Notes under the pieces: generated by a model
The model's input: the letters and a program-made list of their open reading frames with translations, nothing else
What the model was told of the DNA's origin: nothing
Database searches by the model: none
Position numbers and translations under genes: made by a program
Sequence record: MK599315.1
Length of the DNA: 64,000 nt
Direction: 5' to 3' (one strand)
In this document: in pieces, positions 1,414 to 59,860 of the stretch
Position numbering within the stretch: the stretch's first letter is position 1
How the letters are laid out: each line of letters opens with the position of its first letter

Positions 1414-1429
1414 TCCGAGGATCAAAAAT

Positions 1430-11188: not shown

Positions 11189-11211
11189 TACTAACGCTTA
11201 ACGTGGAGTAA

Positions 11212-44885: not shown

Positions 44886-44932
44886 GACATATAGCCCTCT
44901 CCTTCGGGAGAGGGCTTATGCCTTATTTTTTT
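44886..44932. terminator. bidirectional terminator at the strand switch
   Basis: GCCCTCTCC-TTCG-GGAGAGGGC with T-run between convergent genes. Confidence 0.8.
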
Positions 44933-45817
44933 TTATTCCATCAGCTTCCAGCAGATATCAATATTAGACAATAGCCAGTGGTCGTACCAAAGAATAGTTG
45001 CCCCGACTGTATTTTGCCTAACGTATTTAGATGCCTTGTTATTAGAAAGCGCAACTGCTGTATAAGCATCCTTCTTACTTATTGTATCATATTTAACTTG
45101 TAAGTTAGATGCTGTCCGTAACTGTTTATTATTGTTCATCGGAGTGAACAGATTATCAAACATCCACTGATCCATAATGAATGGTCGGTAGGTATGTCCT
45201 TGATAGATAATATCGCGTCCTTGTTCAACTAGACCTTTAAATCGACTGTCACTTTTTATCTGCGGAGTTATATAAGTACCGTCAAGTGTTCCCTCGACAG
45301 CTGCAAACCCAGCTGCATATACTTCATTTGGATACAACCAGTTATGTACGCTGGATGGAATGAAATATACCTCATTGTTAACCATAAACTTTCCATAAGG
45401 AGGTTTAGTAGTACCCTTGAGGTCAGCACTCCTGAGAGAGCTATATGCTGCTACGAGTTCTGTTAGTCCAGGTAAGTCTTCCATAGGGACTGTACCGAAA
45501 TAGCCCAATGTAGAATCACCCCTTTGTAGCCTGTCTACACCCATGTCGGCATTATTAGACAAGGCACCAGTATTACGTTCTATACAGGTAGTATGACCGG
45601 TATCTAAGAATAAACCTTCTTCTAATACCTGCCTAATAACAACATAGTGCTGAACGTTCTTTATGGCATTGAAATCAACTTCATGATAGTTACGGTAAGG
45701 CGGAGTAGCTGGAATGGTTGCAATTGGCGTTAGTATATTAAGATCAGTGATTTCGGCTGATGCATAAACACGATATTCCTTACAAGCAACTCCAGTCCCA
45801 TAAAACGTAATCTTCAT
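44933..45817 (-). CDS. putative virion structural protein (phiKZ-type paralog family)
   Basis: GDSTLGYFG motif shared with 47868-49436; family assignment from recall of phiKZ-like proteins. Confidence 0.6.
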   Translation of the reverse strand: MKITFYGTGVACKEYRVYASAEITDLNILTPIATIPATPPYRNYHEVDFNAIKNVQHYVVIRQVLEEGLFLDTGHTTCIERNTGALSNNADMGVDRLQRGDSTLGYFGTVPMEDLPGLTELVAAYSSLRSADLKGTTKPPYGKFMVNNEVYFIPSSVHNWLYPNEVYAAGFAAVEGTLDGTYITPQIKSDSRFKGLVEQGRDIIYQGHTYRPFIMDQWMFDNLFTPMNNNKQLRTASNLQVKYDTISKKDAYTAVALSNNKASKYVRQNTVGATILWYDHWLLSNIDICWKLME

Positions 45818-45997
45818 TAAACTCGCCCTCTATATTTAAACAGTGGCCACAACACTCTATTTGTTGTATCGGTAGCAACTGTCTTTGTCATAACACCACG
45901 AGCAAGACGAGCGTAATCGGGGTTGTTCAGTGCAGTGGGAGTTCTAACGATCTCTAATGACGAAACAAAGCCTTCATCAGTGGGGAAGGCTTTTATG

Positions 45998-46180
45998 TTA
46001 TCTATTTCGGCGAGTTATACGGTAGCCAAGTGCACCTAAGTCTACTCTAAAAAACCCTTTACCTTTATTGAAACCACCACCAACACGAACCATACGATCA
46101 CCCTTATCCATCTTGATTTCAGTGAGTTTAAAAGTTCGCGTGAACGCAACGTATTTATGTACCAGTGTACTCATAATCAC
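45998..46180 (-). CDS. hypothetical protein
   Basis: GAGGT RBS. Confidence 0.65.
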   Translation of the reverse strand: MIMSTLVHKYVAFTRTFKLTEIKMDKGDRMVRVGGGFNKGKGFFRVDLGALGYRITRRNR

Positions 46181-46181
46181 C

Positions 46182-46442
46182 TCAATGTAAAACGTTCAAA
46201 CCGTCATGCTTATGACAATCACAGGTACAGAGTTCTTGCTCAATTCCACCTATGATTACAAACGTAGCCTTAGCTACAGGTACGTCATGTTTCTTAGCAT
46301 GCCATACAGCTAACTCATCTGTACGTTCTTTCTGAATGATATCGTCTACAACGCCAAATATCTTTCTTAATACATCGATGTTAAAACTACCATCACGATT
46401 GATGTAGTTCATATAGACGGCATTACAACATGCGAAAGCCAT
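46182..46442 (-). CDS. hypothetical protein
   Basis: Packed ORF. Confidence 0.65.
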   Translation of the reverse strand: MAFACCNAVYMNYINRDGSFNIDVLRKIFGVVDDIIQKERTDELAVWHAKKHDVPVAKATFVIIGGIEQELCTCDCHKHDGLNVLH

Positions 46443-46741
46443 TACTGTTTACTCCCTGTATAGAACAATGGACGCAAATCAGTTTGATAATACTCGTCCT
46501 TCATGTGTGTAAAGTTCTTATCAAAGCTTTCTGTTTTATAAGAAGTTCTCAATCCGTTAGGCCATACAACGAGCATATTGCCAACTTCAAAGTCAGTGAT
46601 CAGAGACTCGAATTCATTAGGGGTAATGGTATCACCGCCCGTCTTAACGAACCGACTAGCTATAAATCCACTCCCCCAATCAGAAGACATCCAGGTACCA
46701 GCTTCTGTGATAAGTTTTGCACGAACTAGAGTTTTACTCAT
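46442..46741 (-). CDS. hypothetical protein
   Basis: Packed ORF, TAATG overlap. Confidence 0.7.
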   Translation of the reverse strand: MSKTLVRAKLITEAGTWMSSDWGSGFIASRFVKTGGDTITPNEFESLITDFEVGNMLVVWPNGLRTSYKTESFDKNFTHMKDEYYQTDLRPLFYTGSKQ

Positions 46742-46891
46742 ATTTGTTTCCCCAGTTTACTGTTTTGTCACCATAATCAACACAGGAGAAGGGATTGAAG
46801 TTATGACACCCAATCCCTACACGAGCAATCTCATTACCTTAACATTAGTAATAGCGAGAAATACGTTACGTGTTTCTTTTTTATTCAACAT
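46734..46891 (-). CDS. small hypothetical protein with apparent 1-bp frameshift at 46839-46840
   Basis: AAGGA RBS; MLNKKETRNVFLAITNV then (with one extra A) KGNEIARVGIGCHNFNPFSCVDYGDKTVNWGNKYE*. Confidence 0.5.
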
Positions 46892-46902
46892 TGTATTTTC
46901 CT

Positions 46903-47403
46903 TTAGTTAACGAGAATTACATAAACATCTTTAGCAAACCATTTAGCAACCCAGTTGTAAAATGATTTCTTCTTGATGGTACCGTAAGTAAACACGTTGC
47001 TAGCATTCTGCAAGATCACGTATTTGATGTGTTCTTGTTTACTAGAGAACTCGATAGTATCGGCAGGTCGAACCGAGAGCGAACGGATATGATCGAAGTT
47101 CCTTTGTGGGTTTACTTCTGGTATACGTCGCGCTACTTCCAAAGTGATTTTAGCTCCATCTTCGGAACTATACGGAATCACCAATGTTGAGTCTGCATTA
47201 GCTACGTACCAATCAATAATGAATTGATCAGGGTTCAACAAAGGACCCGTGTGGAATCCTACGGTTTGATGTTCACGGATCATTACCGCATCTTGTTTAA
47301 TACGAAGTAGTCCACGATTAATTGCGATTGCATTAATCTGACGAGAATCCTCGATTAACATATTGATGTAGTTAATGTGTGCGTTAACGATATTGTCATT
47401 CAT
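46903..47403 (-). CDS. hypothetical protein
   Basis: 166-aa ORF. Confidence 0.75.
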   Translation of the reverse strand: MNDNIVNAHINYINMLIEDSRQINAIAINRGLLRIKQDAVMIREHQTVGFHTGPLLNPDQFIIDWYVANADSTLVIPYSSEDGAKITLEVARRIPEVNPQRNFDHIRSLSVRPADTIEFSSKQEHIKYVILQNASNVFTYGTIKKKSFYNWVAKWFAKDVYVILVN

Positions 47404-47636
47404 AGTGAAGCCCTTGAGTAAATTACATTTGTAGTTGACGGAATAAAGGTAGCCTTTCGGCTACCTTTACGGCTGTATCTGTGCTCACTCTTTTAGCTAG
47501 GTGTACTTAAACAGTACATTTACCAGAGCACATTTAGGAGGAGGGATAGATGAGAGGTTTAGTTCCTCTGGAGACTATACCTCCAATTGGAATAGACCTA
47601 AGTCTATTTAATGTTTCATAGACTTGTCCTTTCGAA

Positions 47637-47713
47637 TGGCGACTCCAGCCGGACTCGAACCGGCGACCTTCCGCGTGACAGGCGGATGTTCTAACCAACT
47701 GAACTATGGAGCC
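47637..47713 (-). tRNA. tRNA-Asp(GTC)
   Basis: Cloverleaf; anticodon arm TCCGC-CTGTCAC-GCGGA; encoded CCA. Confidence 0.97.
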
Positions 47714-47725
47714 TAATTTTTAAAC

Positions 47726-47801
<76 letters not shown>

Positions 47802-47867
47802 GAAATTTGAATTGAGTACTGGAATCTACATCACTGAATACTCTCGTATACTATTAGACACGAAGTA

Positions 47868-49436
47868 TTATTTTATTTCGTATTCGACTACGGGTGTTGT
47901 TTTGGATACATCACCACCAAATCGATAGACTCCATCGGATACAACTAACATCTCTTCATACGAAGAAATAGCTGGGAAAGTATCTCCGATTAGTTCTGGC
48001 TCTTTATTAAGTTGCACCAAAGCTAATCGTGTTCCGGAGTTATTCGTCACATAGATGTTATTACCGAATATGATTCCTCTATACGTCGAATATTTGTTGG
48101 CAGGCGCATTCAAAGGAATGACTTCAGTTGTACTAAAATCAGAACTAATCTTTACGTAGTCCGTTGGCGAGATGTTTGTCCCACCTATTGTTAATCTACC
48201 TTGAGATGCAACGATAACTAATTCACCATTATCGTTAAATCCTAAATTATGATGCCATAATTCAATTGGTAGAACATCAGCAATCATGCCGATTTCATAT
48301 GTCGTAAGGTTAACTGTTATAATGTTCTTATGGATTTTATCACTGCGCCCAGAGAAACCACCAACAATGTACAGTATATCGTCTTTAACTATACTAGCTG
48401 TACGTTCGATGTAATATGCATCGACTAAACCTGGAATAGCAGCTAGCTTTTTAGTTTCCCATGTGTCTGTAGCTATCGTGTAAATATAAATAGTCGGACC
48501 AGTAGACAATGGGTTACCATGCAAAATCAACTTACCATTATTGTAAACCATATTGGTTGTAGTTGTCTCGCCTTGGAACGGAACTGTAGATGGTAACTTG
48601 GTCCATGTTTTAGTATCTCGGTCTAACCGATGTAAGTCGGACATGAAAGTAGTAGGTCCTGTTGTATATCCACAGGCCATGTAAATATCGTTGTTATCCA
48701 AATCATACGCGAGTACTGGCATCCCACGTTGCGGCGGTGGATTTACAGTCGACAATACAGAGGTAATACCTTTAAGTTCCTTTGGCGGAATATATTCAAG
48801 TACCGGTCGCCATCCACGATAACTAGTAGCTTCTGTTGGCGGATGACCATCGTAAATATAAAGGCCATTCTTTGCCTGAGGATGAGTTGTCGATGGTGAA
48901 AACTGTAGGTAATTACCATTGGTATTTCTATTAGCCGCCCAGTTATAACTTCCGTTTCCGGCGCCTATAAGTTGTTCATCTGTGTACTTTGCCCAACTTC
49001 CTTTAGTTGTAACATTGCCAAAAATATCCCACAATTCAGAACCTTCATTACCTTGAGTAGTGATATCCGAATAAGGATTTACTCCAGCATTCATTAGACG
49101 AACTTTAAACATATTCCCATCGATTACAATAACTTTACTACCATCTATTAAACCAGCCTCGTCAAGTTGGTTTGGACTAATGGAATGGAGAATAGCTGTC
49201 TTCGAATAATAAAGAATAACATTATTTCTAGATACTTTAATCCAACCAGCATCTGTATTTATAGTACCAATGGAGTCAAGCTCAACAAGTGTTCTTAACT
49301 GAGGGTAAGTTATAAACTTGTCGCTTGTCAACTCACCATACAGACCAAGTGTCGAATCACCTTGTTCAAAGGTAGATGGACCCGGTAGTTTATTTCCTGT
49401 AGCCTTAATGAGCGCAGACAATAATGATTCGAACAT
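47868..49436 (-). CDS. virion-family N-terminal domain fused to a kelch beta-propeller
   Basis: Starts MFESLL; GDSTLGLYG domain; C-terminal repeats (IYMACG, LYIVGG, VYRFGG). Confidence 0.75.
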   Translation of the reverse strand: MFESLLSALIKATGNKLPGPSTFEQGDSTLGLYGELTSDKFITYPQLRTLVELDSIGTINTDAGWIKVSRNNVILYYSKTAILHSISPNQLDEAGLIDGSKVIVIDGNMFKVRLMNAGVNPYSDITTQGNEGSELWDIFGNVTTKGSWAKYTDEQLIGAGNGSYNWAANRNTNGNYLQFSPSTTHPQAKNGLYIYDGHPPTEATSYRGWRPVLEYIPPKELKGITSVLSTVNPPPQRGMPVLAYDLDNNDIYMACGYTTGPTTFMSDLHRLDRDTKTWTKLPSTVPFQGETTTTNMVYNNGKLILHGNPLSTGPTIYIYTIATDTWETKKLAAIPGLVDAYYIERTASIVKDDILYIVGGFSGRSDKIHKNIITVNLTTYEIGMIADVLPIELWHHNLGFNDNGELVIVASQGRLTIGGTNISPTDYVKISSDFSTTEVIPLNAPANKYSTYRGIIFGNNIYVTNNSGTRLALVQLNKEPELIGDTFPAISSYEEMLVVSDGVYRFGGDVSKTTPVVEYEIK

Positions 49437-49600
49437 AATTTTATCCATTGAAAAGTGACTGTTTACAGAGGGGTGGCTGTATAGAACTTCACGTTCCTAC
49501 TCCCTTTCCGTCTAAGGCCTCCCCATTATAGGTACTTACCAAAAGACTAAATCATACAATTTGCAACATAAAGCCCGCCTTTCGGCAGGCCTTATTAAAA

Positions 49601-49686
49601 TGGTAGGAGCAGAGGGACTCGAACCCACAGTGCCTTACGACGGCTGGACCTAAACCAGCTGGCTATACCAATTCGCCTATGCTCCC
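49601..49686 (-). tRNA. tRNA-Leu(TAG)
   Basis: GCTGG-TTTAGGT-CCAGC, long variable arm, CCA. Confidence 0.96.
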
Positions 49687-49744
49687 ATGTAAAATAGCGC
49701 TTAACGCTAATTCTTACATATAATCACTATACCAGTATTTCTTT

Positions 49745-50683
49745 TCACGGGTTTTCTGGATCGTAAACCCACAGGTCATTATGATAGACACCATTTGTAT
49801 AACCGCCAGATAAATAAATCTTACCGTTATAAACTTCCATATTGGCGTAGAACCGAGTAGGCGGCATCTTACCAGGAGGAAGAATTATATTTGACCATGT
49901 GTCAGTTTCAATATCGTAAACACTGAAAATATGATCGTTATTAATAGTGTTAGGAGTAGAACTTGTACCAGATTGCCCACCGAATACATAGATCTTATTA
50001 TTAAGAGCTACGGCTGAATGTCTGTTCCTATTTACAAGACCATTCTTGTGGGCAGTCCATGTGTTGTTGTCGACATTATAACTTCTGAATGACGTAACTG
50101 ACGTATTAGCTGTTTCATAGCCACCTAACGTGTAGAGGCGTCGACCATGACTTGTTAAAGTCGCATAACGAATTTGATAAGGTGGTGTCAAGTTAGCTAC
50201 TGTGAAGTTATCGGTATTATAGCTCTTAAATTCATACATAATACCTTGTGCACCGTTACCACCAAATAGGTACACCTTATTATCAATAGCTGACATGCAA
50301 TGACTGTTACGTACGGCCAATCCACCATTAGAGCGTGTTACAGGTGTAATTGTCTCACCATCAATCGTAAACTCAATCATCGTGTTTGTATCAGCAGAAC
50401 CAGTGTATCCACCGAATACATAAAACTTGTTATCAACTAAACCACCAGCTGCACGTAAATTAACGTTTGCTCCTGCCGGTAGTTCTTTCCATTCGTCTGT
50501 TAAGAAATCATAGACGGATACAGTATTGAACGCGTTAGTGGTAGCACGTCTACCACCGAAGATATAAAGTTTGTCTCCTACGACAACAGAGGTTGACTGG
50601 TTTCTTCCGACGTCGGGTCCCTGTAGCTGAACCCAACCTTGCTTACTTTTATATTCCCCAATTCCTAACAATGCTTCAAACAT
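49745..50683 (-). CDS. kelch-repeat beta-propeller protein
   Basis: Six repeats: KLYIFGG, KFYVFGG, KVYLFGG, RLYTLGG, KIYVFGG, KIYLSGG; starts MFEALL. Confidence 0.92.
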   Translation of the reverse strand: MFEALLGIGEYKSKQGWVQLQGPDVGRNQSTSVVVGDKLYIFGGRRATTNAFNTVSVYDFLTDEWKELPAGANVNLRAAGGLVDNKFYVFGGYTGSADTNTMIEFTIDGETITPVTRSNGGLAVRNSHCMSAIDNKVYLFGGNGAQGIMYEFKSYNTDNFTVANLTPPYQIRYATLTSHGRRLYTLGGYETANTSVTSFRSYNVDNNTWTAHKNGLVNRNRHSAVALNNKIYVFGGQSGTSSTPNTINNDHIFSVYDIETDTWSNIILPPGKMPPTRFYANMEVYNGKIYLSGGYTNGVYHNDLWVYDPENP

Positions 50684-50743
50684 AACGATTACCTTTCGTC
50701 AAAATCATAACATATAACCTCCCCGAAGGGAGGCTTTATGTTT

Positions 50744-50959
50744 TTAATCTTGATTAGCTAACCATTCTTTAAGAAGAGCAACGAAATTGACAGGCTCTTT
50801 TACAATTTGACCATTTCGACAAACTGGTACTTTTTCAATATTCGGGTCATCCATAATTGGTCGATACCATTCCTGGAATTTCTTATTCAGGTCCCGACTA
50901 AAAATTTCCGTAATGAGTGCGCCAAGTCCATCGTCTTGGAACGGAGCGGTTTCGTACAT
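50744..50959 (-). CDS. hypothetical protein
   Basis: GAGG RBS, ATG 50959. Confidence 0.65.
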   Translation of the reverse strand: MYETAPFQDDGLGALITEIFSRDLNKKFQEWYRPIMDDPNIEKVPVCRNGQIVKEPVNFVALLKEWLANQD

Positions 50960-51246
50960 TTTTGTTCCTCTGTAGTTATAGCAAGTTTTACAAGGGCTAG
51001 CCGGTTGGTTACCCAAGCTGTAATGAAATCTCCACGTGTAGTACAATCGTAGCTTACATGTGCTTGATATTCAGGATGGTTAATATTGAATTTATCTATG
51101 ACCTTAGACCGTAGATAGTCTTCTGCTGCTTTTGTTGACATCCCTTCTGTATTTGGGAATTCTTCTATAAGTAGCTCTGACAACATTTTATTTCTTGAAG
51201 CTAGGTCTATATCAGCCTCAGTATGACATGGCATGAAAGCTGTCAT
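50887..51246 (-). CDS. hypothetical protein (3' end uncertain)
   Basis: GAGGT RBS; overlaps the next gene by 73 bp. Confidence 0.6.
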   Translation of the reverse strand: MTAFMPCHTEADIDLASRNKMLSELLIEEFPNTEGMSTKAAEDYLRSKVIDKFNINHPEYQAHVSYDCTTRGDFITAWVTNRLALVKLAITTEEQKCTKPLRSKTMDLAHSLRKFLVGT

Positions 51247-51594
51247 GATTACCTCTTTACATCCTTTGACATACTGTTATATAGCCCAGTATAAAACGAC
51301 ATAAAACTCTCCTTATCGGAGAGTCGTATATCGGACATTAAAACCAGTCTCTTTTTGATCGTAATGTCCATCGTGAGGTGACAGTTAGTGGAACTGAAGA
51401 GACACCTTTCGGTATGGGCGGCCCATTCGACTTCCCTCAATCATCGGCTTGCCACTATTAGCCTTTGGTTTCCGGGTGCTATAAATGGTCACATCGAAAT
51501 ACTACAGTCTGCTGGACCTAATGTGAGATGTTTCTACAGGTAGCTTTCGATGAAGTAACTTTGTTCGTTACATATTGTAATCAACTGGGTATTA

Positions 51595-51741
51595 TTTTAA
51601 TCAAGCGTACAGAGTACACCGATTAAACGGAACGGGCAGGTCAAGACCCACCAAATAGCTTCGAACACAGCACCAATGATTTCACCAACTACATTGAGGG
51701 CTTGTCGCCCTTTATGCTGTTTTTCTTTTTTGTCATCAGTC
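51595..51741 (-). CDS. small membrane protein (not in ORF track); coordinates approximate
   Basis: MTDDKKEKQHKGRQALNVVGEIIGAVFEAIWWVLTCPFRLIGVLCTLD. Confidence 0.5.
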
Positions 51742-51745
51742 ATTA

Positions 51746-51916
51746 TTAACAAACCATAATTGGTACTTCAAGTCCATTGCGTTTGCAATGCTCTTCAAGT
51801 TTACGTTGAGCCTGGTTGAACTTAGCCAGTGTCTCAAGAGTTTTCTCTCGGTTGCCAGCAAGTTGTTCTGGAGTTTGATGAGCATGAATTGCTTTTATAT
51901 AAAGATTAGGAACCAT
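51746..51916 (-). CDS. small hypothetical protein (not in ORF track)
   Basis: MVPNLYIKAIHAHQTPEQLAGNREKTL...; packed between neighbouring genes. Confidence 0.55.
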   Translation of the reverse strand: MVPNLYIKAIHAHQTPEQLAGNREKTLETLAKFNQAQRKLEEHCKRNGLEVPIMVC

Positions 51917-51919
51917 AAG

Positions 51920-52456
51920 TCACCCGAAAGATTTACGTGCGTCGGCTTCATTGTCAAACAAACGACAACCCCAAATATAAGCTGCGTCTAGTTCAGCACG
52001 GAAACATTTCTTAACTTCCTCACTAGCTGTCTTCATGTAGTTGTCTACAGCATCTAAGAAAGAATAACCTTCAGCTTTACCTACAAAGCTGGCTATACTA
52101 GATTCGCCAGTAGCGCGATGTCCTTCTTGCCAAATTTCATATTCTTTCTTCTTAAGTACAGAATCACGCTGTTCTTCTAAGACTTTCATTACTTGATCAA
52201 AGTCTTCATAACCCATGCGACTGAGTCGAGCAATGAGACTTTGCTGTGCTTTACCATCTAACAAAGTCTCATGCATCTCTTTGGTAGCTTCTAGGTACAC
52301 GCCGTTTTGAAGGAGGATCAAGAAGTCATTAAACTTCATATATTCACCACCCTCGTTATCTAAGACCATCTTAGTCTCATTGACAGTGTCCTGTGGACTC
52401 AATAGAATCTTAGGCACTGCGGGCGACCAACGTTTAATCAAACTTAATGCTGACAT
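51920..52456 (-). CDS. hypothetical protein
   Basis: AAGGA RBS, ATG 52456; C-terminal WGCRLFDNEADARKSFG. Confidence 0.8.
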   Translation of the reverse strand: MSALSLIKRWSPAVPKILLSPQDTVNETKMVLDNEGGEYMKFNDFLILLQNGVYLEATKEMHETLLDGKAQQSLIARLSRMGYEDFDQVMKVLEEQRDSVLKKKEYEIWQEGHRATGESSIASFVGKAEGYSFLDAVDNYMKTASEEVKKCFRAELDAAYIWGCRLFDNEADARKSFG

Positions 52457-52518
52457 GTTATTTCCTTTTGTAATAGTTGACATAAAGCTCTCCCCGAAGG
52501 GAGAGCACTATGACGCAT

Positions 52519-52607
52519 TGGTGGAGAGGACTGGACTCGAACCAGTAATGCCCGATACGGACGGCTGATTTACAGTCAGCTGGGGTTACCAATTTTCCTA
52601 TCTCTCC
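52519..52607 (-). tRNA. tRNA-Tyr(GTA)
   Basis: GCTGA-CTGTAAA-TCAGC, long variable arm, CCA. Confidence 0.96.
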
Positions 52608-52653
52608 GAAATCTGGTATAGTCTTACATAGTATTACCATACCAGTATTTCTT

Positions 52654-54510
52654 TTATGGCCTATATGCGTAGAGCTCATTACCTTTCACACCGTTTGGTC
52701 TATTACCGCCAGCGATATATAAGGTATCAGCACATGCAGCCATCATAGCAGCATCGCCGTTTATAGGAATGTCGGGGAGTCTTGTCCACGCACCACTGAC
52801 TGTATCATATTCCCAGAAATCATTCAATCCAGTGCTTGGACTAGCGCCGCCACCTATATAAAGTTTATTATCAATCGCAGCTAATAGACAACCTACACGA
52901 GCAACAAAGCTGGCGGGTACGTTAGATATGGTAGACCATGTACCAGCGACCAAATCAAGAACACGAATGGTTTTAGTCATGGTGTTAGAACTAATCCAAC
53001 CACAGGCAATGTAAAGTTTATTATTCACAATAACCATTGCCGCTCTAGCCAATCCTTCTGGAGCAAGTTGGGGTAATTTATACCATTTGCTTCCAGCCGC
53101 AGCATCTAAACTATAACGATAAATAGCTCTATCGGTGCGTCCATCATCACCAAAAAGATAGGCATATCTACCAAAAGATGTCATGCAGTGGTTTGTTCGC
53201 CATGTGGGTGCGTTTGGTTCAGATATACTGTCACTCCACTTGTCTTCTAGATGGTTATAAGAATACAGATCTGGAGAATAGTTACTACCAGAGAAAATAA
53301 GAATCTGGTCAGCGACAGTTGTGGCTGCCGATTGATAACGTGCAGGAGGTTTAACTGGTCCTTCTTTCCACGTATCTGTAAATACATCGTAAATCAAGTT
53401 TGTATTCTTTACTGCACCATCACTACCAAACATAACAAACAGTTCTGAATAAGTACTTGCTACGGCTGCTTGTACCCTACCGCCAGGCATGTCTGCTTTT
53501 CTTACCCATGTTTTCTCTGGGACAGGTTCCCAGTTTTCGGGAGCACGTGATACCTTGTAGATTTCTTTTATTTTATTTGTTGTGCTAGTCCAGTTAGTAG
53601 AGAATGGTTCAGATGTACCACCGACAATATAAATATCATCTTTTAGTCCAATAACACCCGACATGTTTCGATATGATAATCCGGTATCCGATGAGCGTGC
53701 CCAAGATTTTTTGACTGGATTATAACGATGGAGGTATATTTTGTTACCTTGACCGAGGTTACCCCAGCCTGTATAGTTATAGTAACCTTCATCATCAATA
53801 AAACCACCATGCCATACATGGTGATATGCAGGGTCCATTGTCTGCCATAATTCCCATTGTTTGGAAATAAGATTAAATCGATGTATTCTTAGGTTCTGAT
53901 TATTTGCCCATCCACCCAAACAATAGATATAATCACCATGTCCAAAAATTGACATACCTGCTAATATCCCACCACCGACATCATCAAAACTTGGTAATCC
54001 TGGATAATTTTCAAGAGTCGCGCCAGTAAGTGGATTTAATTTATAGAATCCGGCTTTATAACTGGGTAAAACATATATGTCCCCTCTATGTTGACATACA
54101 GCATTCCCATACGACGTCTGTGGTAAACGTCCTGTTAACTCAACTGCACTAGTTAACCCAGGTAAATTCAATGCACCTGTCGTTGATAAAAGACCAGCTA
54201 AATTAGTAGAAAATTGGCCGCCTGGTATTAGCATTCTATTATTATAAATAGTTGCTCCATTGATGGAAATAGTTCTAGCATGGTTTCCACCAACAGTCAT
54301 CGACATATCGGACAGTTTAAATATTTCAGTTGCAGAGCGGATAGCCCCAGTAGAATCTTGACCACCAACTACATATAAGTTATCGTTATCCATCGCAACG
54401 ATTGGACCTGCAATACCCACTGGAAGGTCAGCTACCTTCTTGGTTCGCATATAAAAGGGTACATAAGGAGTCCTCTCCCTTGCACCAGTACTGAGTAATA
54501 TCTCGAACAT
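52654..54510 (-). CDS. double kelch beta-propeller protein (about 12 repeats)
   Basis: Repeats LYVVGG, IYCLGG, IYIVGG, LFVMFG, ILIFSG, AYLFG, LYIACG, LYIGGG, LYIAGG; starts MFEILL. Confidence 0.92.
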   Translation of the reverse strand: MFEILLSTGARERTPYVPFYMRTKKVADLPVGIAGPIVAMDNDNLYVVGGQDSTGAIRSATEIFKLSDMSMTVGGNHARTISINGATIYNNRMLIPGGQFSTNLAGLLSTTGALNLPGLTSAVELTGRLPQTSYGNAVCQHRGDIYVLPSYKAGFYKLNPLTGATLENYPGLPSFDDVGGGILAGMSIFGHGDYIYCLGGWANNQNLRIHRFNLISKQWELWQTMDPAYHHVWHGGFIDDEGYYNYTGWGNLGQGNKIYLHRYNPVKKSWARSSDTGLSYRNMSGVIGLKDDIYIVGGTSEPFSTNWTSTTNKIKEIYKVSRAPENWEPVPEKTWVRKADMPGGRVQAAVASTYSELFVMFGSDGAVKNTNLIYDVFTDTWKEGPVKPPARYQSAATTVADQILIFSGSNYSPDLYSYNHLEDKWSDSISEPNAPTWRTNHCMTSFGRYAYLFGDDGRTDRAIYRYSLDAAAGSKWYKLPQLAPEGLARAAMVIVNNKLYIACGWISSNTMTKTIRVLDLVAGTWSTISNVPASFVARVGCLLAAIDNKLYIGGGASPSTGLNDFWEYDTVSGAWTRLPDIPINGDAAMMAACADTLYIAGGNRPNGVKGNELYAYRP

Positions 54511-54576
54511 GTGCGTGCTCTCAGTCAGTATTATTGATTCATAAGATAACTGTAGTCTATAAATGACAACTACTCA

Positions 54577-55233
54577 TTACTTAGTTATTGTCAAATCAAT
54601 ATTCACTAAAGAGCCTTGTAGTTGAGGTTCATCTTTCTCTACAATATGAAAAGATGCTTTATTACCGTAAATACCTTTAAGAGCTTCTTCAAAGGCATAT
54701 ATCGATACATACGCCACATCCATATAAAAATTATATTTTATAATTTGTGGATTAGCTGTATATCCGGGTAATGCAGCTTGATCATTATTAACTGTGAACC
54801 ATAGCCCCTCACATACAACATGATTAATTCTTTCTAGCACTTTATTTAATTCGATAAGATCTGTTAATCGACCCACGTTTTTATCATCCCGAATTACTCT
54901 AGTAGCTTCTTCCTCAGTCAGAGGTAATACGATAACATGTTTACCTACATATTCTTGAAAATATGGCGTGGATGTTTCTATTGAAAATACGTTAGCGAAG
55001 CCAAAACCATCGTAATATGTATCTGGTGTTTCCCGATTCACGCCAATCGAGTCTAATAAGCTACCATACAAATACCCTTCGGCTATTACCTCATAGGACA
55101 CCAAAGTCCTAAAATATTTCTTACCCTCTTCGGGGAGGGGTCCCGCATGTGTTTTATGCCAAACGGTATCTATAACCTGGACTTTCATCAAATCAGGTAA
55201 TCCCAAAAACAGGCCTTTTGATCTATTCAACAT
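54577..55233 (-). CDS. hypothetical protein
   Basis: GGAG RBS, 218 aa. Confidence 0.75.
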   Translation of the reverse strand: MLNRSKGLFLGLPDLMKVQVIDTVWHKTHAGPLPEEGKKYFRTLVSYEVIAEGYLYGSLLDSIGVNRETPDTYYDGFGFANVFSIETSTPYFQEYVGKHVIVLPLTEEEATRVIRDDKNVGRLTDLIELNKVLERINHVVCEGLWFTVNNDQAALPGYTANPQIIKYNFYMDVAYVSIYAFEEALKGIYGNKASFHIVEKDEPQLQGSLVNIDLTITK

Positions 55234-55281
55234 TTTCAGTATCTCCTATAACTCCGATATTGGAGTATAACATCACGGCAT

Positions 55282-55308
55282 AAAAGAGTAGCCATTGGCT
55301 ACTCTTTT
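55282..55308 (-). terminator. terminator after the tRNA-Asn 3' fragment
   Basis: AAAAGAGTAGCC-ATT-GGCTACTCTTTT; near-duplicate at 55970-55993. Confidence 0.8.
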
Positions 55309-55313
55309 GAATT

Positions 55314-55348
55314 TGGCTCCGCGACCTGGACTCGAACCAGGGACCCAG
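55314..55348 (-). pseudogene. 3' half (positions about 42-76) of a disrupted tRNA-Asn
   Basis: CTGGGTC-CCTGG-TTCGAGT-CCAGG-TCGCGGA-G-CCA. Confidence 0.9.
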
Positions 55349-55359
55349 TATATTTTTTT

Positions 55360-55917
55360 TTATTGTGTGGGGACCAAGGTGCTAATACCCCCATTAGCAC
55401 CGACCCTAATAAACCTAGCCGGAATATTGATCTTGTATGCTCGGCACCATTTACGAATAGCGTTATCGGATACTCCATACTTCTCTCCTATATTTACAAG
55501 AGATAGCAATGTAACATCGAGGGCAAGTTGTTCTTTGGATGGTCGATCCACCTTACGACGACCTTTGGCAGAACACTCGGGGCTACAGAATGTTATCAGT
55601 CGGTGACTAATGACAATACCACAGCCAGCACAAAGCTTAGTTGGATAGTTCCTAGGATCAATACCGAGCCGTTTCATCCAACCATGTAACTTCATGTGTT
55701 GTGACTGAGGGAGAATCAATAAGTTCTCTGGATGGTTGTTAAGCTTATTCTCATCCAGATGATGAACTTCCTCGTCATCGTAAAGTGGTCTACCTAATGT
55801 GTCTTCTCCAACCACTCGATGTTCGTAAACCCATCCAAACATTTTAGGGTTAGCTATGGCTTGACGATGTTCGGGTAAATATAATGCCCTATAGCCGTTA
55901 ATTATTTTCTCTTTCAT
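55360..55917 (-). CDS. HNH homing endonuclease (HNH + CxxC/CSxxC zinc finger + HTH)
   Basis: YEHRVV...EVHHLDENKLNNHPENL...HMKLH; CAGC...CSPEC; IGEKYGVSDNAIRKW. Confidence 0.93.
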   Translation of the reverse strand: MKEKIINGYRALYLPEHRQAIANPKMFGWVYEHRVVGEDTLGRPLYDDEEVHHLDENKLNNHPENLLILPQSQHMKLHGWMKRLGIDPRNYPTKLCAGCGIVISHRLITFCSPECSAKGRRKVDRPSKEQLALDVTLLSLVNIGEKYGVSDNAIRKWCRAYKINIPARFIRVGANGGISTLVPTQ

Positions 55918-55969
55918 ATCGAACCTAGGATATATAAATAGATCGCTAGTTCGATCTATGTAACGGAAT

Positions 55970-55993
55970 AAAGAGTAGCCGGAGCTACTCTTT
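55970..55993 (-). terminator. terminator after the cassette-borne tRNA-Asn
   Basis: AAAGAGTAGC-CGGA-GCTACTCTTT. Confidence 0.75.
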
Positions 55994-55998
55994 GAAAT

Positions 55999-56085
55999 TG
56001 GCTGGTAAGGTAGGATTCGAACCTACGATGGGCTTTCGCCAACGGATTAACAGTCCGCCCCCTGCTACCGCTCGGGTACTTACCA
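55999..56085 (-). tRNA. tRNA-Asn(GTT) with long variable arm (class II-like body)
   Basis: TGGTAAG/CTTACCA acceptor stem, G73, GCGGA-CTGTTAA-TCCGT, variable stem GGC-GAAA-GCC, CCA. Confidence 0.93.
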
Positions 56086-56096
56086 AGAAAACTATC

Positions 56097-56130
56097 CAGT
56101 CGCTTGCTCTACCGACTGAGCTATCGCGGA
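56097..56130 (-). pseudogene. 5' half (positions 1-34) of a disrupted tRNA-Asn
   Basis: TCCGCGA-TA-GCTC-AGTCGGTA-GAGC-A-AGCGA-CTG; acceptor TCCGCGA pairs perfectly with TCGCGGA of the 55314-55348 fragment. Confidence 0.9.
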
Positions 56131-56492
56131 AGAATTATTAACAACTTCTTTCTTGTGGAAAAACCACAGGTAACTGAATTACAGTATTTCACTACATATT
56201 ATTACAATCTGAGTATTATTATTATTTCTTGTCATAACAAGAATGTAAATAACGTGTAGTTAACCTTATTATAAGTTATCGAAGTTACTAATTCTAACTA
56301 AAACGAACCACTATTACATCCGTACCAAAAGTATCTTCAACCCACTGGTTAAATTCTTTATCAGTGATACCACGTAGGTTCAAATTAAATAAAGAATTGT
56401 CAACAAGAATATATCGAACAGCTGAATTATAGTACTCTTAGATACCATAATCGTGTTAGATAATTATCTAAATAGTTATAAATATTATCATT

Positions 56493-57500
56493 TTAATCAA
56501 TGGCTAATGGTGCTAGTTTTACCTGATATATACCTGATAACAATTGGCTTTTTAACATATATGCTCCACCACCAACTGGCATTTTAGATCCACCTGCAAT
56601 GATCATGCTATTATCTGGACCTTTGGCTATAGATGAAATATTAAGGAATCCAATACCTAGTTCAAATGGTTCAGCCCATTTCCGGCGTCTAATATTAAAA
56701 CGCTGTGCAAACATTTTAGTTACACCACCGACATCAACTGCATTAAGGTAATTAAAATATTCCCCATCTACATAACCATTACCTTGCCATATTGTTGCTT
56801 TGTCAATAGGTATTATTAGCCATGGTGTTAGTTCCCATACAAGTGTAGTAACATTGTATCTATAGACTTCTAAGTTTGGTATGTTCTTAGTATTATCCCA
56901 GCCACCAAAATGATAGAAATAACCATTATAATAAAATAATTGTTGACCTGACCTAGGTCCACCGCTATAGTCTTGACCGCCGAGCCAGTTCTTACTCGAT
57001 GGTTTTAATCGCATGGCGTTTGCACCAACTGGATTAACACACATAATAAGATCATTGCCATCAGACGCTGACGCAGTTCCCCATAATGCACCAGGGCCAC
57101 TATAACGCTCAACGCGACTACCTGTGCTTATATCAAAATGTTGTATAAAGTTAGAAGTACCTGTACCCCCATCACCTGCTGCGTTCCATCCAGTAATACC
57201 ACCATAAACAATAAAGTTATTTTTATGTAATGTACCAAATCCAAGTGATACACCCGGTAAAAATGTACCAGATGCTGTCGCGCTTATCTCTGCAAATGGG
57301 TTTATAGTGAACTGTCTGAAAACAGTTGCCGCTGATTGTCCTTCCGTATGATGTCCGGATCCAACATATAACGTATTTCCATCTACGTACGACATCGTAC
57401 CTGCCAATGCTACTGGTAGGTCACCTAATTTTACAATTTCATTGAATCCAACCAAGGGTGTTTCGTTGTCTAAACCTGATGATAATAGTAATTCAAACAT
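56493..57500 (-). CDS. kelch-repeat beta-propeller protein
   Basis: Repeats LYVGSG, FIVYGG, FYHFGG, MIIAGG; starts MFELLL; similar to the N-terminal propeller of 52654-54510. Confidence 0.85.
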   Translation of the reverse strand: MFELLLSSGLDNETPLVGFNEIVKLGDLPVALAGTMSYVDGNTLYVGSGHHTEGQSAATVFRQFTINPFAEISATASGTFLPGVSLGFGTLHKNNFIVYGGITGWNAAGDGGTGTSNFIQHFDISTGSRVERYSGPGALWGTASASDGNDLIMCVNPVGANAMRLKPSSKNWLGGQDYSGGPRSGQQLFYYNGYFYHFGGWDNTKNIPNLEVYRYNVTTLVWELTPWLIIPIDKATIWQGNGYVDGEYFNYLNAVDVGGVTKMFAQRFNIRRRKWAEPFELGIGFLNISSIAKGPDNSMIIAGGSKMPVGGGAYMLKSQLLSGIYQVKLAPLAID

Positions 57501-57623
57501 GAGTATGCTCTCAAGTAAACCATTTTAGATCATAGGATAACCTTTGCGGTTCAGATATTTATTTTATTGTCATAGACAGCATAATGCTCCCCTATTTAAG
57601 GGAGGCATTATGCTTTATTAATT

Positions 57624-57700
57624 TGGTGGGCCCAGCAGGACTTGAACCTGCGACCAAGCGATTATGAGTCGCCTGCTCTAACCAACTGAGCTATAGACCC
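57624..57700 (-). tRNA. tRNA-Ile2(CAT) (lysidine type; would be auto-called Met)
   Basis: GGCGA-CTCATAA-TCGCT and overall body match the enterobacterial ileX-type tRNA; CCA. Confidence 0.85.
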
Positions 57701-57744
57701 TAATTCATTACCTACATATTAGTATACATAGGGTATTCTTAATA

Positions 57745-58092
57745 TCATGGACGATCTGTCCAATGTTTAAAATAGTTACTGTCACTAGGGCGGCCATGCT
57801 TGGCGAGAATGTTTTTAAGTTCTTCGCCAGACAACTTAATTCTATCGCCTACTGGACTATCCAGTTCGGGACAGGGTTCGGTCTTACGTGTGATGATTAG
57901 ATTGTCAGTTCCATCTTTGAAGATAAAGATAAACTGTGTTTCATTATCACTAATCTTTTTCTTAACGCAGTGTTTTACTTCCGGATGTTTCTTGTGAATA
58001 GCTGTAAAAGATTCAACAAGAGTTAGATTCATAAACTCGGGGCTAACAAAAGTGAAATATACAGCGTTTTGTGTTGGGGTTAGATGATTCAT
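57745..58092 (-). CDS. hypothetical protein
   Basis: GGAG RBS. Confidence 0.75.
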   Translation of the reverse strand: MNHLTPTQNAVYFTFVSPEFMNLTLVESFTAIHKKHPEVKHCVKKKISDNETQFIFIFKDGTDNLIITRKTEPCPELDSPVGDRIKLSGEELKNILAKHGRPSDSNYFKHWTDRP

Positions 58093-58094
58093 AT

Positions 58095-58400
58095 TTACTC
58101 CGTATGTTTGAGGTAGGACTCAATCGCTTTAAGACCTTTATTAAAGAACATGACTTCAACGTAAGTAATGTTACTTATACTCTCTTCGATAAGTTCCCAT
58201 TTGATACAACGTGTAATAGCGTTGATTGTAATATCTAATCCATTTGGGAATAGGGTTACTTCATCAGTCAGGCGAATCCAATCGGGAGCTTTCGCTCCAT
58301 CACGTAAGCGGGGACTAAACGTAAGATCGTAGAGTTTCTGCAATGGTTCTTTTAGTAGCGCTTTTTGTTCTTGATGTTCCATAATTTCTCTTAAAGACAT
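58095..58400 (-). CDS. hypothetical protein
   Basis: Packed ORF. Confidence 0.75.
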   Translation of the reverse strand: MSLREIMEHQEQKALLKEPLQKLYDLTFSPRLRDGAKAPDWIRLTDEVTLFPNGLDITINAITRCIKWELIEESISNITYVEVMFFNKGLKAIESYLKHTE

Positions 58401-58612
58401 TTGAAAATAAAAATAGAATACTCGTCAGGATTAGTAACTTTCAACGTATTCTCCGTTCGTAGTATCTCGTATCCACGGTACTTGTTTTCTAAAATATCTA
58501 GACGCGAAATACACTGCGCTTTATTTTCAAACTGGATAGTCGATTCTTCTGTGGATGTAATTCCAAACAACCCCACGTGAATCGCTAAAACAAACATTGT
58601 CGCGATGTTCAT
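58391..58612 (-). CDS. hypothetical exported/membrane protein
   Basis: ATG 58612; hydrophobic N-terminus. Confidence 0.6.
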   Translation of the reverse strand: MNIATMFVLAIHVGLFGITSTEESTIQFENKAQCISRLDILENKYRGYEILRTENTLKVTNPDEYSIFIFKCL

Positions 58613-58667
58613 GTTTATTATCCCGATGCAATATAATACCCTCCATAACGGAGGGCTTATATTTAAA

Positions 58668-58743
58668 TGGTCGGAGTGGAGAGACTCGAACTCCCGACAT
58701 CCTGCTCCCAAAGCAGGCGCGCTACCAACTGCGCTACACTCCG
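58668..58743 (-). tRNA. tRNA-Pro(TGG)
   Basis: CCTGC-TTTGGGA-GCAGG; C1-G72; CCA. Confidence 0.97.
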
Positions 58744-58749
58744 TAAATT

Positions 58750-58835
58750 TGGTACCCGGTGTCGGACTCGAACCGACACGGCTTTCGCCGAGAGATTTTA
58801 AGTCTCTTGTGTACTACCAATTTCACCAACCGGGC
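58750..58835 (-). tRNA. tRNA-Leu(TAA)
   Basis: AGAGA-CTTAAAA-TCTCT, long variable arm, CCA. Confidence 0.97.
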
Positions 58836-58875
58836 ATTTCTTCTCTATAAATAGAGGCTCCTCAGTATTATTCAA

Positions 58876-59052
58876 CATAAAGCCTCCCAGTGGGAGGCGA
58901 TATGCTCATCAACACAACAAGGAGAAAGATACAACTTACCAACTGAAAGGAGGGGATCACAACAGGGAGTCTTACTTCCTAGAAGCCAGCTGGAAGGGTT
59001 GCTGGCTCCGGCGCGCTGTGATCCTAGTAAAGATGAGGAGTGACATCTCTAC
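58876..59052 (-). ncRNA. candidate structured small RNA
   Basis: GTAATGATATGTA promoter-like motif at 59050-59062; three-way junction at 58954-59024; family hairpin at 58876-58904. Confidence 0.45.
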
Positions 59053-59074
59053 ATATCATTACATAGCTGGTAAG

Positions 59075-59827
59075 TTATTCTTCTTCGCTAACGAAAGCAA
59101 TACGCTCTTCGATATTTTCCAGAGTTATTACTTCATCGAAGTTCTCAGTAGAAACACTTGTGAAATTATGTTCTTTATCAATTTGCGCTAGTCCAATCTG
59201 CATCACTTTGCGAGCGTCTGGGCTAAGTCCATCAATACCTGCTGCTTCAATAGCAGCTTTATATCCAGTGAGGGTAGTAAGAGAAGACATGTTCTTTTCC
59301 TCTTTTTTGTTTCTTACATGAATGAAAATTATAGGTCCTTCAGATTTATACATTTCAAAACCTGGAGTTAGGATAATCTCATTATTAATATTTTTAGCTA
59401 CATAACCACCACGGATAACCTTGCTGATATAACTGTTCAAACCAGCACCACCATCAGCGAAGTATTTCATGTCCTGTAGTTGTATTTCAGTGATACTTTT
59501 TAATGTATAAAGATAAAACACCTCTCCACCGAATTCTACAAGCATCCAATCAGGACCATATTTGTAGCTCTTTACATTAGATCTACCGGAACGATTGTAA
59601 TATGTCCACATGTCGTCCGTATTATTAATAAGCTCGGTTATGGTGGGTGGCTGTATACCTTTATCAGAATCTGGTTCGACCCATACATCGTAAGGGCGAT
59701 CAGCGCGCGGGTTATTGACCTCATCAAATAACTGATTGATTAGATCATCCATTTCCGCTTCGAGAGATATCGCATATCGCAGCAAAAGGTTAATGTTAGG
59801 CATGGTTGTTACCTTTAGAATTGACAT
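59075..59827 (-). CDS. hypothetical protein with KTSC-like central segment
   Basis: SNVKSYKYGPDWMLVEF...YLYT...MKYFADGGAGLNSYIS. Confidence 0.7.
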   Translation of the reverse strand: MSILKVTTMPNINLLLRYAISLEAEMDDLINQLFDEVNNPRADRPYDVWVEPDSDKGIQPPTITELINNTDDMWTYYNRSGRSNVKSYKYGPDWMLVEFGGEVFYLYTLKSITEIQLQDMKYFADGGAGLNSYISKVIRGGYVAKNINNEIILTPGFEMYKSEGPIIFIHVRNKKEEKNMSSLTTLTGYKAAIEAAGIDGLSPDARKVMQIGLAQIDKEHNFTSVSTENFDEVITLENIEERIAFVSEEE

Positions 59828-59860
59828 AACATAAAGCCCTCCCGAAGGAGGGCAGTATGA

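Follow-up and report, generated by a model that had tools for sequence, protein, structure and literature searches.

How do otherwise near-identical phiKZ-like phages come to carry different sets of putative adsorption proteins? The question is raised by a locus of Pseudomonas phage PA1C (sequence record MK599315.1, 304,671 bp) that lies at positions 44,933 to 57,500 of a 64,000-nucleotide stretch of DNA, hereafter the window. The locus contains four minus-strand genes for kelch beta-propeller proteins, numbered K1 to K4 by rising coordinate, each of which is followed by a tRNA. A preliminary description, made from the letters of the window, had proposed that these genes form an exchangeable array of virion propellers that bind receptors or glycans, with the tRNAs and their promoters acting as recombination anchors. 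After comparing the locus with that of related phages, we consider it probable that it is a hyperplastic tRNA/accessory region in which kelch adsorption cassettes are exchanged whole at shared junctions.

The window is 100% identical to the genome of PA1C, as searched with the stretch 44900–57600. PA1C is a phiKZ-like, nucleus-forming jumbo phage whose closest relatives are phiLBG22, phiHQ, BRkr, HHBS36_1, PS119XW (the type species of Pawinskivirus), and HPP-Temi; matches to Phikzvirus genomes cover the same stretch in part. The locus was compared across PA1C and these six close relatives, phiKZ, the Phikzvirus pPA-N1803-4At.2, and PhiPA3, which belongs to a different genus. tRNAs were called by ARAGORN and also with the Rfam tRNA model, protein families were assigned with Pfam and PHROG, and structural matches were sought in BFVD and the PDB with Foldseek. 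Promoters and terminators in PA1C were called by the resemblance of their motifs to phiKZ signals. No account of the kelch/tRNA array was found in papers on phages of the PA1C group. The units of the array are the following.

47637-47713, minus strand: tRNA-Asp(gtc), downstream of K1
47726-47801, minus strand: tRNA-Thr(tgt), downstream of K1
47802..47867, minus strand: K1 3' junction, from the stop codon to tRNA-Thr
47868..49436, minus strand: K1, 522 amino acids (aa) from an MFESLL start; the open reading frame (ORF) reaches 49448
49565..49686, minus strand: tRNA-Leu(tag) (49601-49686) with a downstream hairpin/TTAT terminator-like element
49687..49744, minus strand: K2 3' junction, with the repeated block 49713-49745 and a TATG motif ~28 nucleotides (nt) upstream of the tRNA
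49745..50683, minus strand: K2, 312 aa, a propeller alone, start MFEALL
50684..50743, minus strand: K2 5' region, with a TATG motif overlapped by a predicted terminator hairpin and followed by the 5' untranslated region (UTR)
52519-52607, minus strand: tRNA-Tyr(gta), with a predicted hairpin and TTAT terminator at 52479-52506
52608..52653, minus strand: K3 3' junction, with the second, promoter-like copy of the repeated block
52654..54510, minus strand: K3, 618 aa, a gp298-like half plus a kelch propeller, allele class A of three
54491..54552, minus strand: K3 5' junction, a TATG late-promoter-like motif, 5' UTR, start codon, and first ~7 codons (MFEILLS)
55314..56141, minus strand: interrupted tRNA-Asn region, a canonical tRNA-Asn with one insertion
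56142..56492, minus strand: K4/tRNA-Asn spacer, with residual similarity to the phiKZ gp297 region
56493..57500, minus strand: K4, 335 aa, orthologue of phiKZ gp298, a divergent kelch/NanM-like propeller
57481..57543, minus strand: K4 5' junction, second copy in the window of the promoter/5' UTR/start block

Support for the exchangeable-cassette reading is found at the K3 slot, which is occupied by three allele classes of the same architecture: class A in PA1C, phiLBG22, and phiHQ; class B in PS119XW; and class C in BRkr, HHBS36_1, and HPP-Temi. The classes share 22–30% aa identity, while the flanks of the slot are 90–100% identical in nucleotide sequence and the small ORFs adjoining K3 are 94–99% identical between phages with different alleles. 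At the 3' end, alignment of the classes fails almost up to the stop codon, and within a few bases of it they become near-identical. At the 5' end, they are near-identical from the promoter motif to ~20 nt inside the ORF and then diverge. None of the six close relatives differs from PA1C in the tRNA-Tyr downstream (100% identity). Class A is nearer to gp360 of PhiPA3 (33%) than to classes B and C of its sister phages. Furthermore, the class C ORF, its 3' junction, and tRNA-Tyr are 98–100% identical between HPP-Temi and BRkr/HHBS36_1, whereas the flanks of this shared cassette fall to ~60–88% directly past tRNA-Tyr and are lower or unalignable upstream of the 5' junction.

At K4, the gene of phiHQ is 97.6% identical in nucleotide sequence to phiKZ gp298, compared to 85.6% to K4 of PA1C. 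Upstream of K4, phiHQ resembles PA1C across tRNA-Met, its terminator, and the initial part of the 5' junction; the switch in parentage lies inside the shared 5' block. In PA1C itself, the block from K4 to the neighboring HNH gene is 83–85% identical to phiKZ, compared to 66% for the neighboring core gene nrdB. In pPA-N1803-4At.2, gp298-family genes form a tandem pair in which both members have a 5' junction of their own, and the extra gene is 94% identical in aa sequence to the N-terminal 337 residues of PS119XW K3. Within PA1C K4, the first ~700 nt are 77–84% identical to gp298, which lies at 10737-11744 of the phiKZ region compared, and the last ~300 nt are 93–96% identical; from these figures, K4 appears either to be mosaic itself or to have a C-terminal third under much stronger constraint.

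Whole units are also present or absent. PS119XW, HHBS36_1, and HPP-Temi lack K4 together with the HNH gene and tRNA-Asn. HPP-Temi also lacks K1 and K2 but keeps the tRNA-Leu between them, at 98.9% identity and with both of its flanks replaced. The edges of the replacements in HPP-Temi fall at tRNA ends, at the K1 stop region, and at the TATG-containing part of the K2 3' junction, and parts of the K1 3' junction remain despite the absence of K1. Two genes near the kelch units vary as well:

44933..45817, minus strand: ORF294, a ~70-aa N-terminus plus a GDSTLG-containing domain (PHROG 1062)
54577..55233, minus strand: ORF218, function not assigned by family searches

ORF218, which had no family matches in the Pfam and PHROG searches, is found in PA1C, BRkr, and HPP-Temi and is missing from phiHQ, phiLBG22, PS119XW, and HHBS36_1; in phiHQ and phiLBG22 the indel ends at the upstream edge of the K3 5' junction. 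The ORF294 slot holds two genes with the same domain in BRkr and three to four in HPP-Temi.

K1 and K2 of PA1C share 83% and 88% nucleotide identity, respectively, with their counterparts in phiHQ, PS119XW, and HHBS36_1 (per-feature identity table). The spacers, tRNAs, and small ORFs between and around these two genes are mostly 94–100% identical in the same three phages, the low exceptions being the K1 3' junction (58%) and tRNA-Thr, tRNA-Asp, and the K2 3' junction (88%). When K1 is sorted into classes a and b and K3 into classes A and C, all four combinations occur: a-A in PA1C, a-C in BRkr, b-A in phiHQ, and b-C in HHBS36_1. Four combinations of such divergent alleles therefore require recombination between the slots. 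The K1 and K2 proteins differ by 3–12% between classes.

Comparison across related phages had been named in the preliminary description as the way to check its exchangeable array, and the array holds up under it. The locus varies among relatives in its K3 classes, in the presence or absence of the K1, K2, and K4 units, and in their reassortment, and the breakpoints of this variation in kelch number and identity fall at junctions and tRNA ends. A diversity-generating retroelement was also considered as the source of variation and was rejected, as the locus contains no reverse transcriptase and the alleles differ over their whole length.

What marks the boundaries of these exchanges? The two near-identical 3' junctions and the two similar 5' junctions that had been described beforehand are indeed found on direct reading of the sequence. 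The 3' repeat has copies at 49713-49745 and 52623-52655, and its 18-nt core pattern occurs at these two places only in the 64 kb (0.24 expected); the block is present in all relatives. Looser versions of the 3' junction are found upstream of tRNA-Met, upstream of the tRNA-Asn region, and upstream of the tRNA pair of pPA-N1803-4At.2. The 5' repeat has copies at 54505-54552 and 57497-57543. It is conserved at every K3 allele, K4, phiKZ gp298, and PhiPA3 gp360, and is present twice in pPA-N1803-4At.2. A scan of IMG/VR with the 5' junction pattern returned a single contig, that of a PA7-sized Phikzvirus.

The junctions resemble regulatory signals known from phiKZ, in which late promoters carry a TATG motif with transcription starting at its G, middle promoters carry an A/T-rich motif centered near −24 (PMC4666361), and terminators are hairpins followed by TTAT (bioRxiv 10.1101/2023.10.13.562163). 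In the 5' junction, TATG is located ~30 nt upstream of the ATG. In the 3' junction, it is located ~28 nt upstream of the tRNA, with an A-rich element further upstream, and hairpin-TTAT elements are found downstream of tRNAs. The 3' junction of K2 can thus be read as a putative phiKZ-type promoter for its tRNA. Conserved RNA structure in the 5' UTR is not supported as the cause of junction conservation: RNAalifold returned only a hairpin of −2.8 kcal/mol with no compensatory changes.

ARAGORN calls eight tRNAs, all on the minus strand, spanning 47637-58835. The distance from the stop codon to the tRNA is 66 nt for K1 (Thr/Asp), 58 nt for K2 (Leu(tag)), 46 nt for K3 (Tyr), and ~400 nt for K4 (Asn), so that the tRNA said to follow each kelch gene is found in every case. 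A homologue of gp297 has been lost from the long K4/tRNA-Asn spacer by one deletion relative to phiKZ. In the annotation of the PA1C block, 6 of 18 coding sequences directly precede a tRNA group and these six include all four kelch genes, an outcome with a chance probability of 15/3060 = 0.005 (hypergeometric).

The suggestion that tRNAs and promoters serve as recombination anchors is upheld in part. The junctions mark boundaries, and the phiHQ crossover lies in the 5' block, but an anchor role for the tRNAs is not established. They form islands of 97–100% identity at which homology resumes, and purifying selection would give the same pattern. Because of this, and because the tRNAs double as insertion sites for HNH genes, we treat their role as anchors as a suggestion.

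The HNH genes are themselves candidates for initiating exchange. The features involved around K4 are:

55360-55917, minus strand: HNH endonuclease gene, phiKZ gp296-like (HNH_3, E 1e-10; PHROG 15471, E 4e-52)
55999-56085, minus strand: extra tRNA with a GTT anticodon, 87 nt with a long variable arm; its phiKZ counterpart is at 9645-9733 of the phiKZ region compared
57624-57700, minus strand: tRNA-Met, upstream of K4, with a terminator-like hairpin within 57564..57700

In both PA1C and phiKZ, the tRNA-Asn gene is broken once by an insertion that carries the HNH gene, an 87–89-nt tRNA with the GTT anticodon, and a terminator. The empty site is represented by pPA-N1803-4At.2, whose 76-nt tRNA-Asn is uninterrupted and which has no HNH gene between its gp297 and gp295.1 homologues. 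HNH genes occupy three sites among these phages: one lies beside tRNA-Asn (PA1C, phiHQ, phiLBG22, BRkr, and phiKZ), one takes the position of tRNA-Asp (BRkr and phiLBG22; the BRkr paralogue matches HNH_3 at E 6.5e-11), and one, a gene annotated as HNH, replaces K1 in HPP-Temi, with a piece of tRNA-Thr directly upstream of it. PS119XW and HHBS36_1, which lack the whole K4-HNH block, have no HNH gene in the locus. By analogy, this pattern fits freestanding homing endonucleases that target tRNA genes, such as SegB in the tRNA cluster of T4 (PMC2330249), and nuclease genes are known to mark exchange boundaries in phages (PMC10448857). Judging from their positions, HNH endonucleases that insert at tRNAs may be a real driver of exchange. 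That the HNH gene lies in a group I or II intron was rejected, as no Rfam intron model matched the 951-nt stretch even at E ≤ 10, although a degenerate intron is conceivable. The extra GTT tRNA has a class II shape, scores 54 bits against the Rfam tRNA model, and is 95–100% conserved between the PA1C group and phiKZ; it may substitute for the function of the tRNA-Asn gene that surrounds it.

We then consider the proteins that these cassettes encode. Pfam Kelch matches are strong for K2 (Kelch_1, E 9e-46, 4 stretches) and K3 (Kelch_6, E 4e-32), moderate for K1 (Kelch_6, 33 bits against a cut-off of 25.3), and weak for K4, which is borderline (Kelch_6, 24.6 bits against the same cut-off of 25.3). 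K4 does match designed kelch proteins in the PDB with E down to 1.5e-12, and it matches PHROG 19623, the family of phiKZ gp298, at E 2e-202 across 335/335 positions, sharing 90% aa and 85% nucleotide identity with gp298 at equal length. K3 combines residues 1-324, which match the same PHROG 19623 at E 5e-27 (the BRkr and PS119XW alleles do so at E ~1e-12), with a propeller. AlphaFold2 (AF2) models residues 330-618 as an all-beta propeller with a predicted local distance difference test (pLDDT) score of ~90; the N-terminal half is modeled with low confidence because the alignment is shallow. Weak Pfam matches to NanM are also found among the kelch proteins. Word-based protein searches with K1 and K3 returned almost nothing beyond the phages' own clusters, and K1, K3, and K4 had no sequence match among solved phage virion structures, matching only cellular or designed kelch proteins.

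K1 is laid out as an N-terminal domain of ~200–220 aa followed by a kelch propeller, and AF2 models its residues 1-235 at pLDDT 88. As had been noticed earlier, the first kelch protein shares a GDSTLG domain with the product of 44933-45817: the N-terminal half of K1 and ORF294 match PHROG 1062 at E 2e-31 and 2e-16, respectively, and pairwise BLASTP aligns them around the GDSTLG motif at E 0.004. The domain has 758 relatives at E ≤ 0.001 in a representative library, often at the C-terminus or in several copies in giant proteins. In BFVD, it matches 'virion structural protein' entries of Noxifer, PhiPA3, 201phi2-1, EL, RSL2, Phabio, and Erwinia jumbo phages, and a protein of phage EL has the same domain-plus-kelch order as K1. 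A C-type-lectin/FGE-like fold, as in the variable ligand-binding domains of the Mtd kind, is a tentative possibility for this domain: its best PDB matches, PvdO, EgtB, CarF, and FGE, reach only E ≥ 0.47 with template-modeling (TM) scores of 0.2–0.3. Mtd_N was found in one distant homologue below the cut-off, and the PDB profile search matched that N-terminal piece only. The PA1C kelch set thus has three architectures: a propeller alone, a gp298-like domain plus propeller, and a virion-family domain plus propeller.

A feature beyond those noted earlier is that all four kelch proteins begin with MFE-x-LL. Among ORFs of at least 80 aa in the window, one other begins with MFE and then continues differently. 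An MFE-x-LL-(S/A/G) heptapeptide opens every family member across three genera, at overall identities of 22–54%; the starts outside PA1C include 7011 in the PhiPA3 region compared and 5412 and 6578 in that of pPA-N1803-4At.2. K1 begins in this way too, although the domain that follows is unrelated to gp298. The heptapeptide could serve in docking or sorting, or it may be retained through nucleotide-level conservation of the 5' junction.

The function of these propellers is best approached through phiKZ gp298, a kelch/NanM-like protein found at low abundance in virions (PMC12676376; bioRxiv 10.1101/2025.11.23.690004, a 2025 preprint). On two wild strains, one of clinical origin and one from soil, adsorption of an orf298 transposon mutant is reported to fail, the defect being apparent within 15 min, while gp298 is dispensable on PAO1 (PMC12676376). 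An adsorption role in the virion is therefore supported for K4 through its orthologue. PhiPA3 gp360 has the K3 architecture, begins with MFEILLS, keeps the 5' junction, is encoded between tRNAs, and is annotated as a virion structural protein, as are homologues in Noxifer and 201phi2-1. The proposed virion propellers that bind receptors or glycans are thus borne out in so far as the orthologue of K4 is a virion protein needed for adsorption to some wild strains and the K1 domain matches virion-annotated proteins; for K1 to K3 themselves the role is putative.

Taken together, we propose the following mechanism. A unit consists of a TATG late-type promoter with a conserved 5' UTR, an MFE-x-LL kelch ORF and its stop codon, a second promoter, a tRNA, and a hairpin-TTAT terminator, the signals being predicted by motif. 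The propellers, including by extension K1 to K3, would be gp298-family accessory adsorption factors, associated with the virion in low copy and widening adsorption to particular strains, and K1 and ORF294 would contribute a second domain of ligand-binding type that is found in many jumbo-phage virion proteins. In mixed infections, ORFs would be swapped, gained, and lost as whole cassettes through homologous recombination, with crossovers in the sequences common to units and phages: the 5' block of promoter, UTR, and first codons, the 3' block of stop codon and promoter, and the tRNA genes. Many of these exchanges are probably initiated by double-strand breaks made by HNH homing endonucleases. 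Phages that are otherwise near-identical would thereby come to differ in their combination of adsorption modules.

Several points weigh against this account. The close-genome sample is seven, the promoter and terminator calls at the junctions are resemblances to phiKZ motifs, and boundaries at conserved elements are expected under any recombination mechanism. The 5' junction is kept even in PhiPA3, a phage of another genus, and its conservation therefore appears to be at least partly functional. In HPP-Temi, the annotated HNH ORF lacks a Pfam match, and a Foldseek search of the PDB with the K1 N-terminal domain found nothing significant. The virion location and binding activity of K1 to K3 are putative, if plausible, and gp298 is outside the 40 proteins placed in the phiKZ cryo-electron microscopy atlas (PMC13250141).

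Could the same pattern arise otherwise? If the kelch genes evolved fast in place, purifying selection alone would make the junctions and tRNAs look like boundaries and no exchange would be needed. The 5' junction and MFE-x-LL start, conserved across genera, can be read as functional constraint of this kind, as can the invariant tRNA-Tyr, and the modest differences of the K1 and K2 proteins are compatible with divergence in place. However, we find this very improbable, and for K3 and K4 it is already contradicted: K3 alleles of 22–30% aa identity lie beside small ORFs that have hardly changed, class A sits closer to PhiPA3 gp360 than to sister-phage alleles, phiHQ K4 is nearly that of phiKZ, class C is shared by phages whose downstream flanks have diverged, whole genes come and go, and K1 and K3 occur in all four combinations. 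Hitch-hiking on homing endonucleases is a second alternative, in which HNH enzymes hit tRNA genes and co-convert their neighbors, the kelch genes being passengers unrelated to the tRNAs and junctions. HNH genes at three sites, one of them in a tRNA gene and another beside a truncated tRNA piece, the empty-site tRNA-Asn allele, the precedents of T4 SegB (PMC2330249) and of nucleases at exchange boundaries (PMC10448857), and the gain and loss of non-kelch ORFs (ORF166, ORF218, and small ORFs) all speak for such events. Yet several boundaries lie at the promoter/start block rather than at a tRNA, PS119XW and HHBS36_1 have different K3 alleles with no HNH gene in the locus, a tRNA directly follows 4/4 kelch genes compared to 2/14 other coding sequences, and the gp298-family/tRNA neighborhood is retained in PhiPA3. 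Hitch-hiking as the whole explanation is thus quite unlikely.

A different objection grants that the cassettes are exchangeable and holds that the proteins are not virion receptor binders, being instead intracellular or surface kelch scaffolds directed against host factors or defenses, or NanM-like sugar mutarotases, diversified by an arms race. The surroundings of gp298 are indeed non-essential accessory genes, distant from the tail genes, and the neighboring gp302 has been called a defense inhibitor (PMC12676376); the weak NanM matches and the absence of gp298 from the 40-protein atlas also point this way. We nevertheless judge such a role unlikely given the detection of gp298 in virions and the early adsorption defect of its mutant, the 'virion structural protein' labels on the PhiPA3, Noxifer, and 201phi2-1 homologues, and the TATG late-type promoter motifs upstream of the genes. 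A more ambitious version of exchange would make each kelch gene with its tRNA a self-contained mobile unit of nucleus-forming jumbo phages. Here tRNA-recognizing HNH enzymes would start conversion across species and genera, the conversion tract would end in the promoter/start block, the tRNA would aid the reading of A/T-ending codons in a GC-rich host, and MFE-x-LL would mount the propeller on the virion. We regard this full chain as doubtful, and favor whole-cassette exchange at shared junctions in the more limited form given above.

The exchange of cassettes at shared junctions has parallels in known systems. Closest to the locus are the PeSL (promoter early stem-loop) elements of T4-like phages (PMC2839356, PMC4122927), short promoter/terminator composites that border variable genes of hyperplastic regions, serve as exchange points, and have been proposed to help phages adapt to new hosts. 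In both systems, variable genes are bordered by copies of a short conserved regulatory sequence, and the breakpoints of indels and replacements among relatives coincide with it. The likeness is one of function and not of membership: the PA1C junctions are of the phiKZ-polymerase type (TATG, hairpin-TTAT) rather than a sigma-70 early promoter plus stem-loop, the 5' junction enters the coding sequence for ~7 codons, tRNAs are part of the repeated unit, and the cargo is a single protein family. Mosaic adhesins of the T4 superfamily, gp37/gp38 (PMC3157838), likewise have a conserved gene start and a variable remainder that assorts independently of the genome and determines host range. Unlike in these adhesins, the conserved part in PA1C is a heptapeptide plus upstream non-coding DNA, and whole ORFs are replaced. 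T4 SegB (PMC2330249) and boundary nucleases (PMC10448857) resemble the PA1C locus in that endonuclease genes lie in a tRNA cluster, are present or absent with an empty site, and are expected to co-convert flanking markers in mixed infection. The putative PA1C enzymes are HNH rather than GIY-YIG, and one sits with an extra tRNA inside a tRNA gene.

Within phiKZ, gp298 is the direct counterpart: a kelch/NanM-like protein encoded in a tRNA region away from the tail genes, orthologous to K4 with the same 5' junction, neighboring HNH gene, and tRNA-Asn, and paralogous to the N-terminal half of K3. However, phiKZ has one such gene compared to the four kelch genes and three architectures of PA1C, and neither variation between phages nor a junction structure has been described for gp298. 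The phiKZ tail-fiber paralogues gp131, gp133, gp134, and gp135 (PMC13250141) form another paralogous virion set with a beta-propeller proposed to contact the cell surface, located in gp131 as a C-terminal seven-bladed propeller. K1 to K4 differ in being of kelch type, encoded outside the tail module, and without sequence match to the solved phiKZ proteins.

These comparisons matter because phiKZ-like jumbo phages are therapy candidates against Pseudomonas aeruginosa and models of the phage nucleus, and the determinants of their strain range are poorly known. Close relatives of phiKZ carry one to four gp298-type genes in defined slots. The content of these slots is the main difference between otherwise near-identical genomes, its alleles cross species and genera, and it would offer a marker readable from sequence for predicting differences in strain range. 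The locus would also be a natural example of very large virulent phages shuffling modules at regulatory junctions.

In composition, the kelch genes are AT-richer than the nrd and Nampt-like genes, as stated in the preliminary description. Their GC content is 38.9–41.2%, compared to 44.8–45.8% for nrdB and nrdA and 49.1% for the Nampt-like gene (1355-3196). The low GC extends beyond the kelch genes to the whole minus-strand block at 44.9–59.8 kb. Relative to the rest of the window, codons are shifted to A/T-ending ones in the kelch genes and, less strongly, in the other minus-strand genes of 44900-59900. Within codon families, the kelch genes use TTA 6.5-fold, AGA 5.5-fold, ATA 3.3-fold, ACA 2.9-fold, and CCA 2.4-fold as often as the rest of the window. 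The locus has cognate tRNAs for TTA (Leu-taa), ACA (Thr-tgt), and CCA (Pro-tgg) and none for AGA or ATA. The shift would fit an origin in lower-GC phiKZ-type phages, and perhaps reflects a translational link to the tRNAs of the locus.

A few observations concern neighboring tRNAs and genes. ORF250 (59075-59827, minus strand) matches 'virion structural protein' and internal-head-protein families (PHROG 17428, 24656, and 6807; weakly Pfam phiKZ_IP) and directly precedes tRNAs Leu-taa and Pro, so that five of six tRNA groups follow an actual or look-alike putative virion-protein gene. The tRNA-Leu(tag) homologue of PS119XW (7065-7147 of its region compared) is labeled a pseudo-tRNA in RefSeq, yet is 97% identical to the PA1C gene accepted by ARAGORN and Rfam. 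Finally, the gene for the large subunit of ribonucleotide reductase (61561-63845, minus strand) is divided by one frame change into two ORFs of 522 and 239 aa, compared to one 762-aa gene in phiKZ, which could reflect a real split, programmed frameshifting, or a sequencing error.

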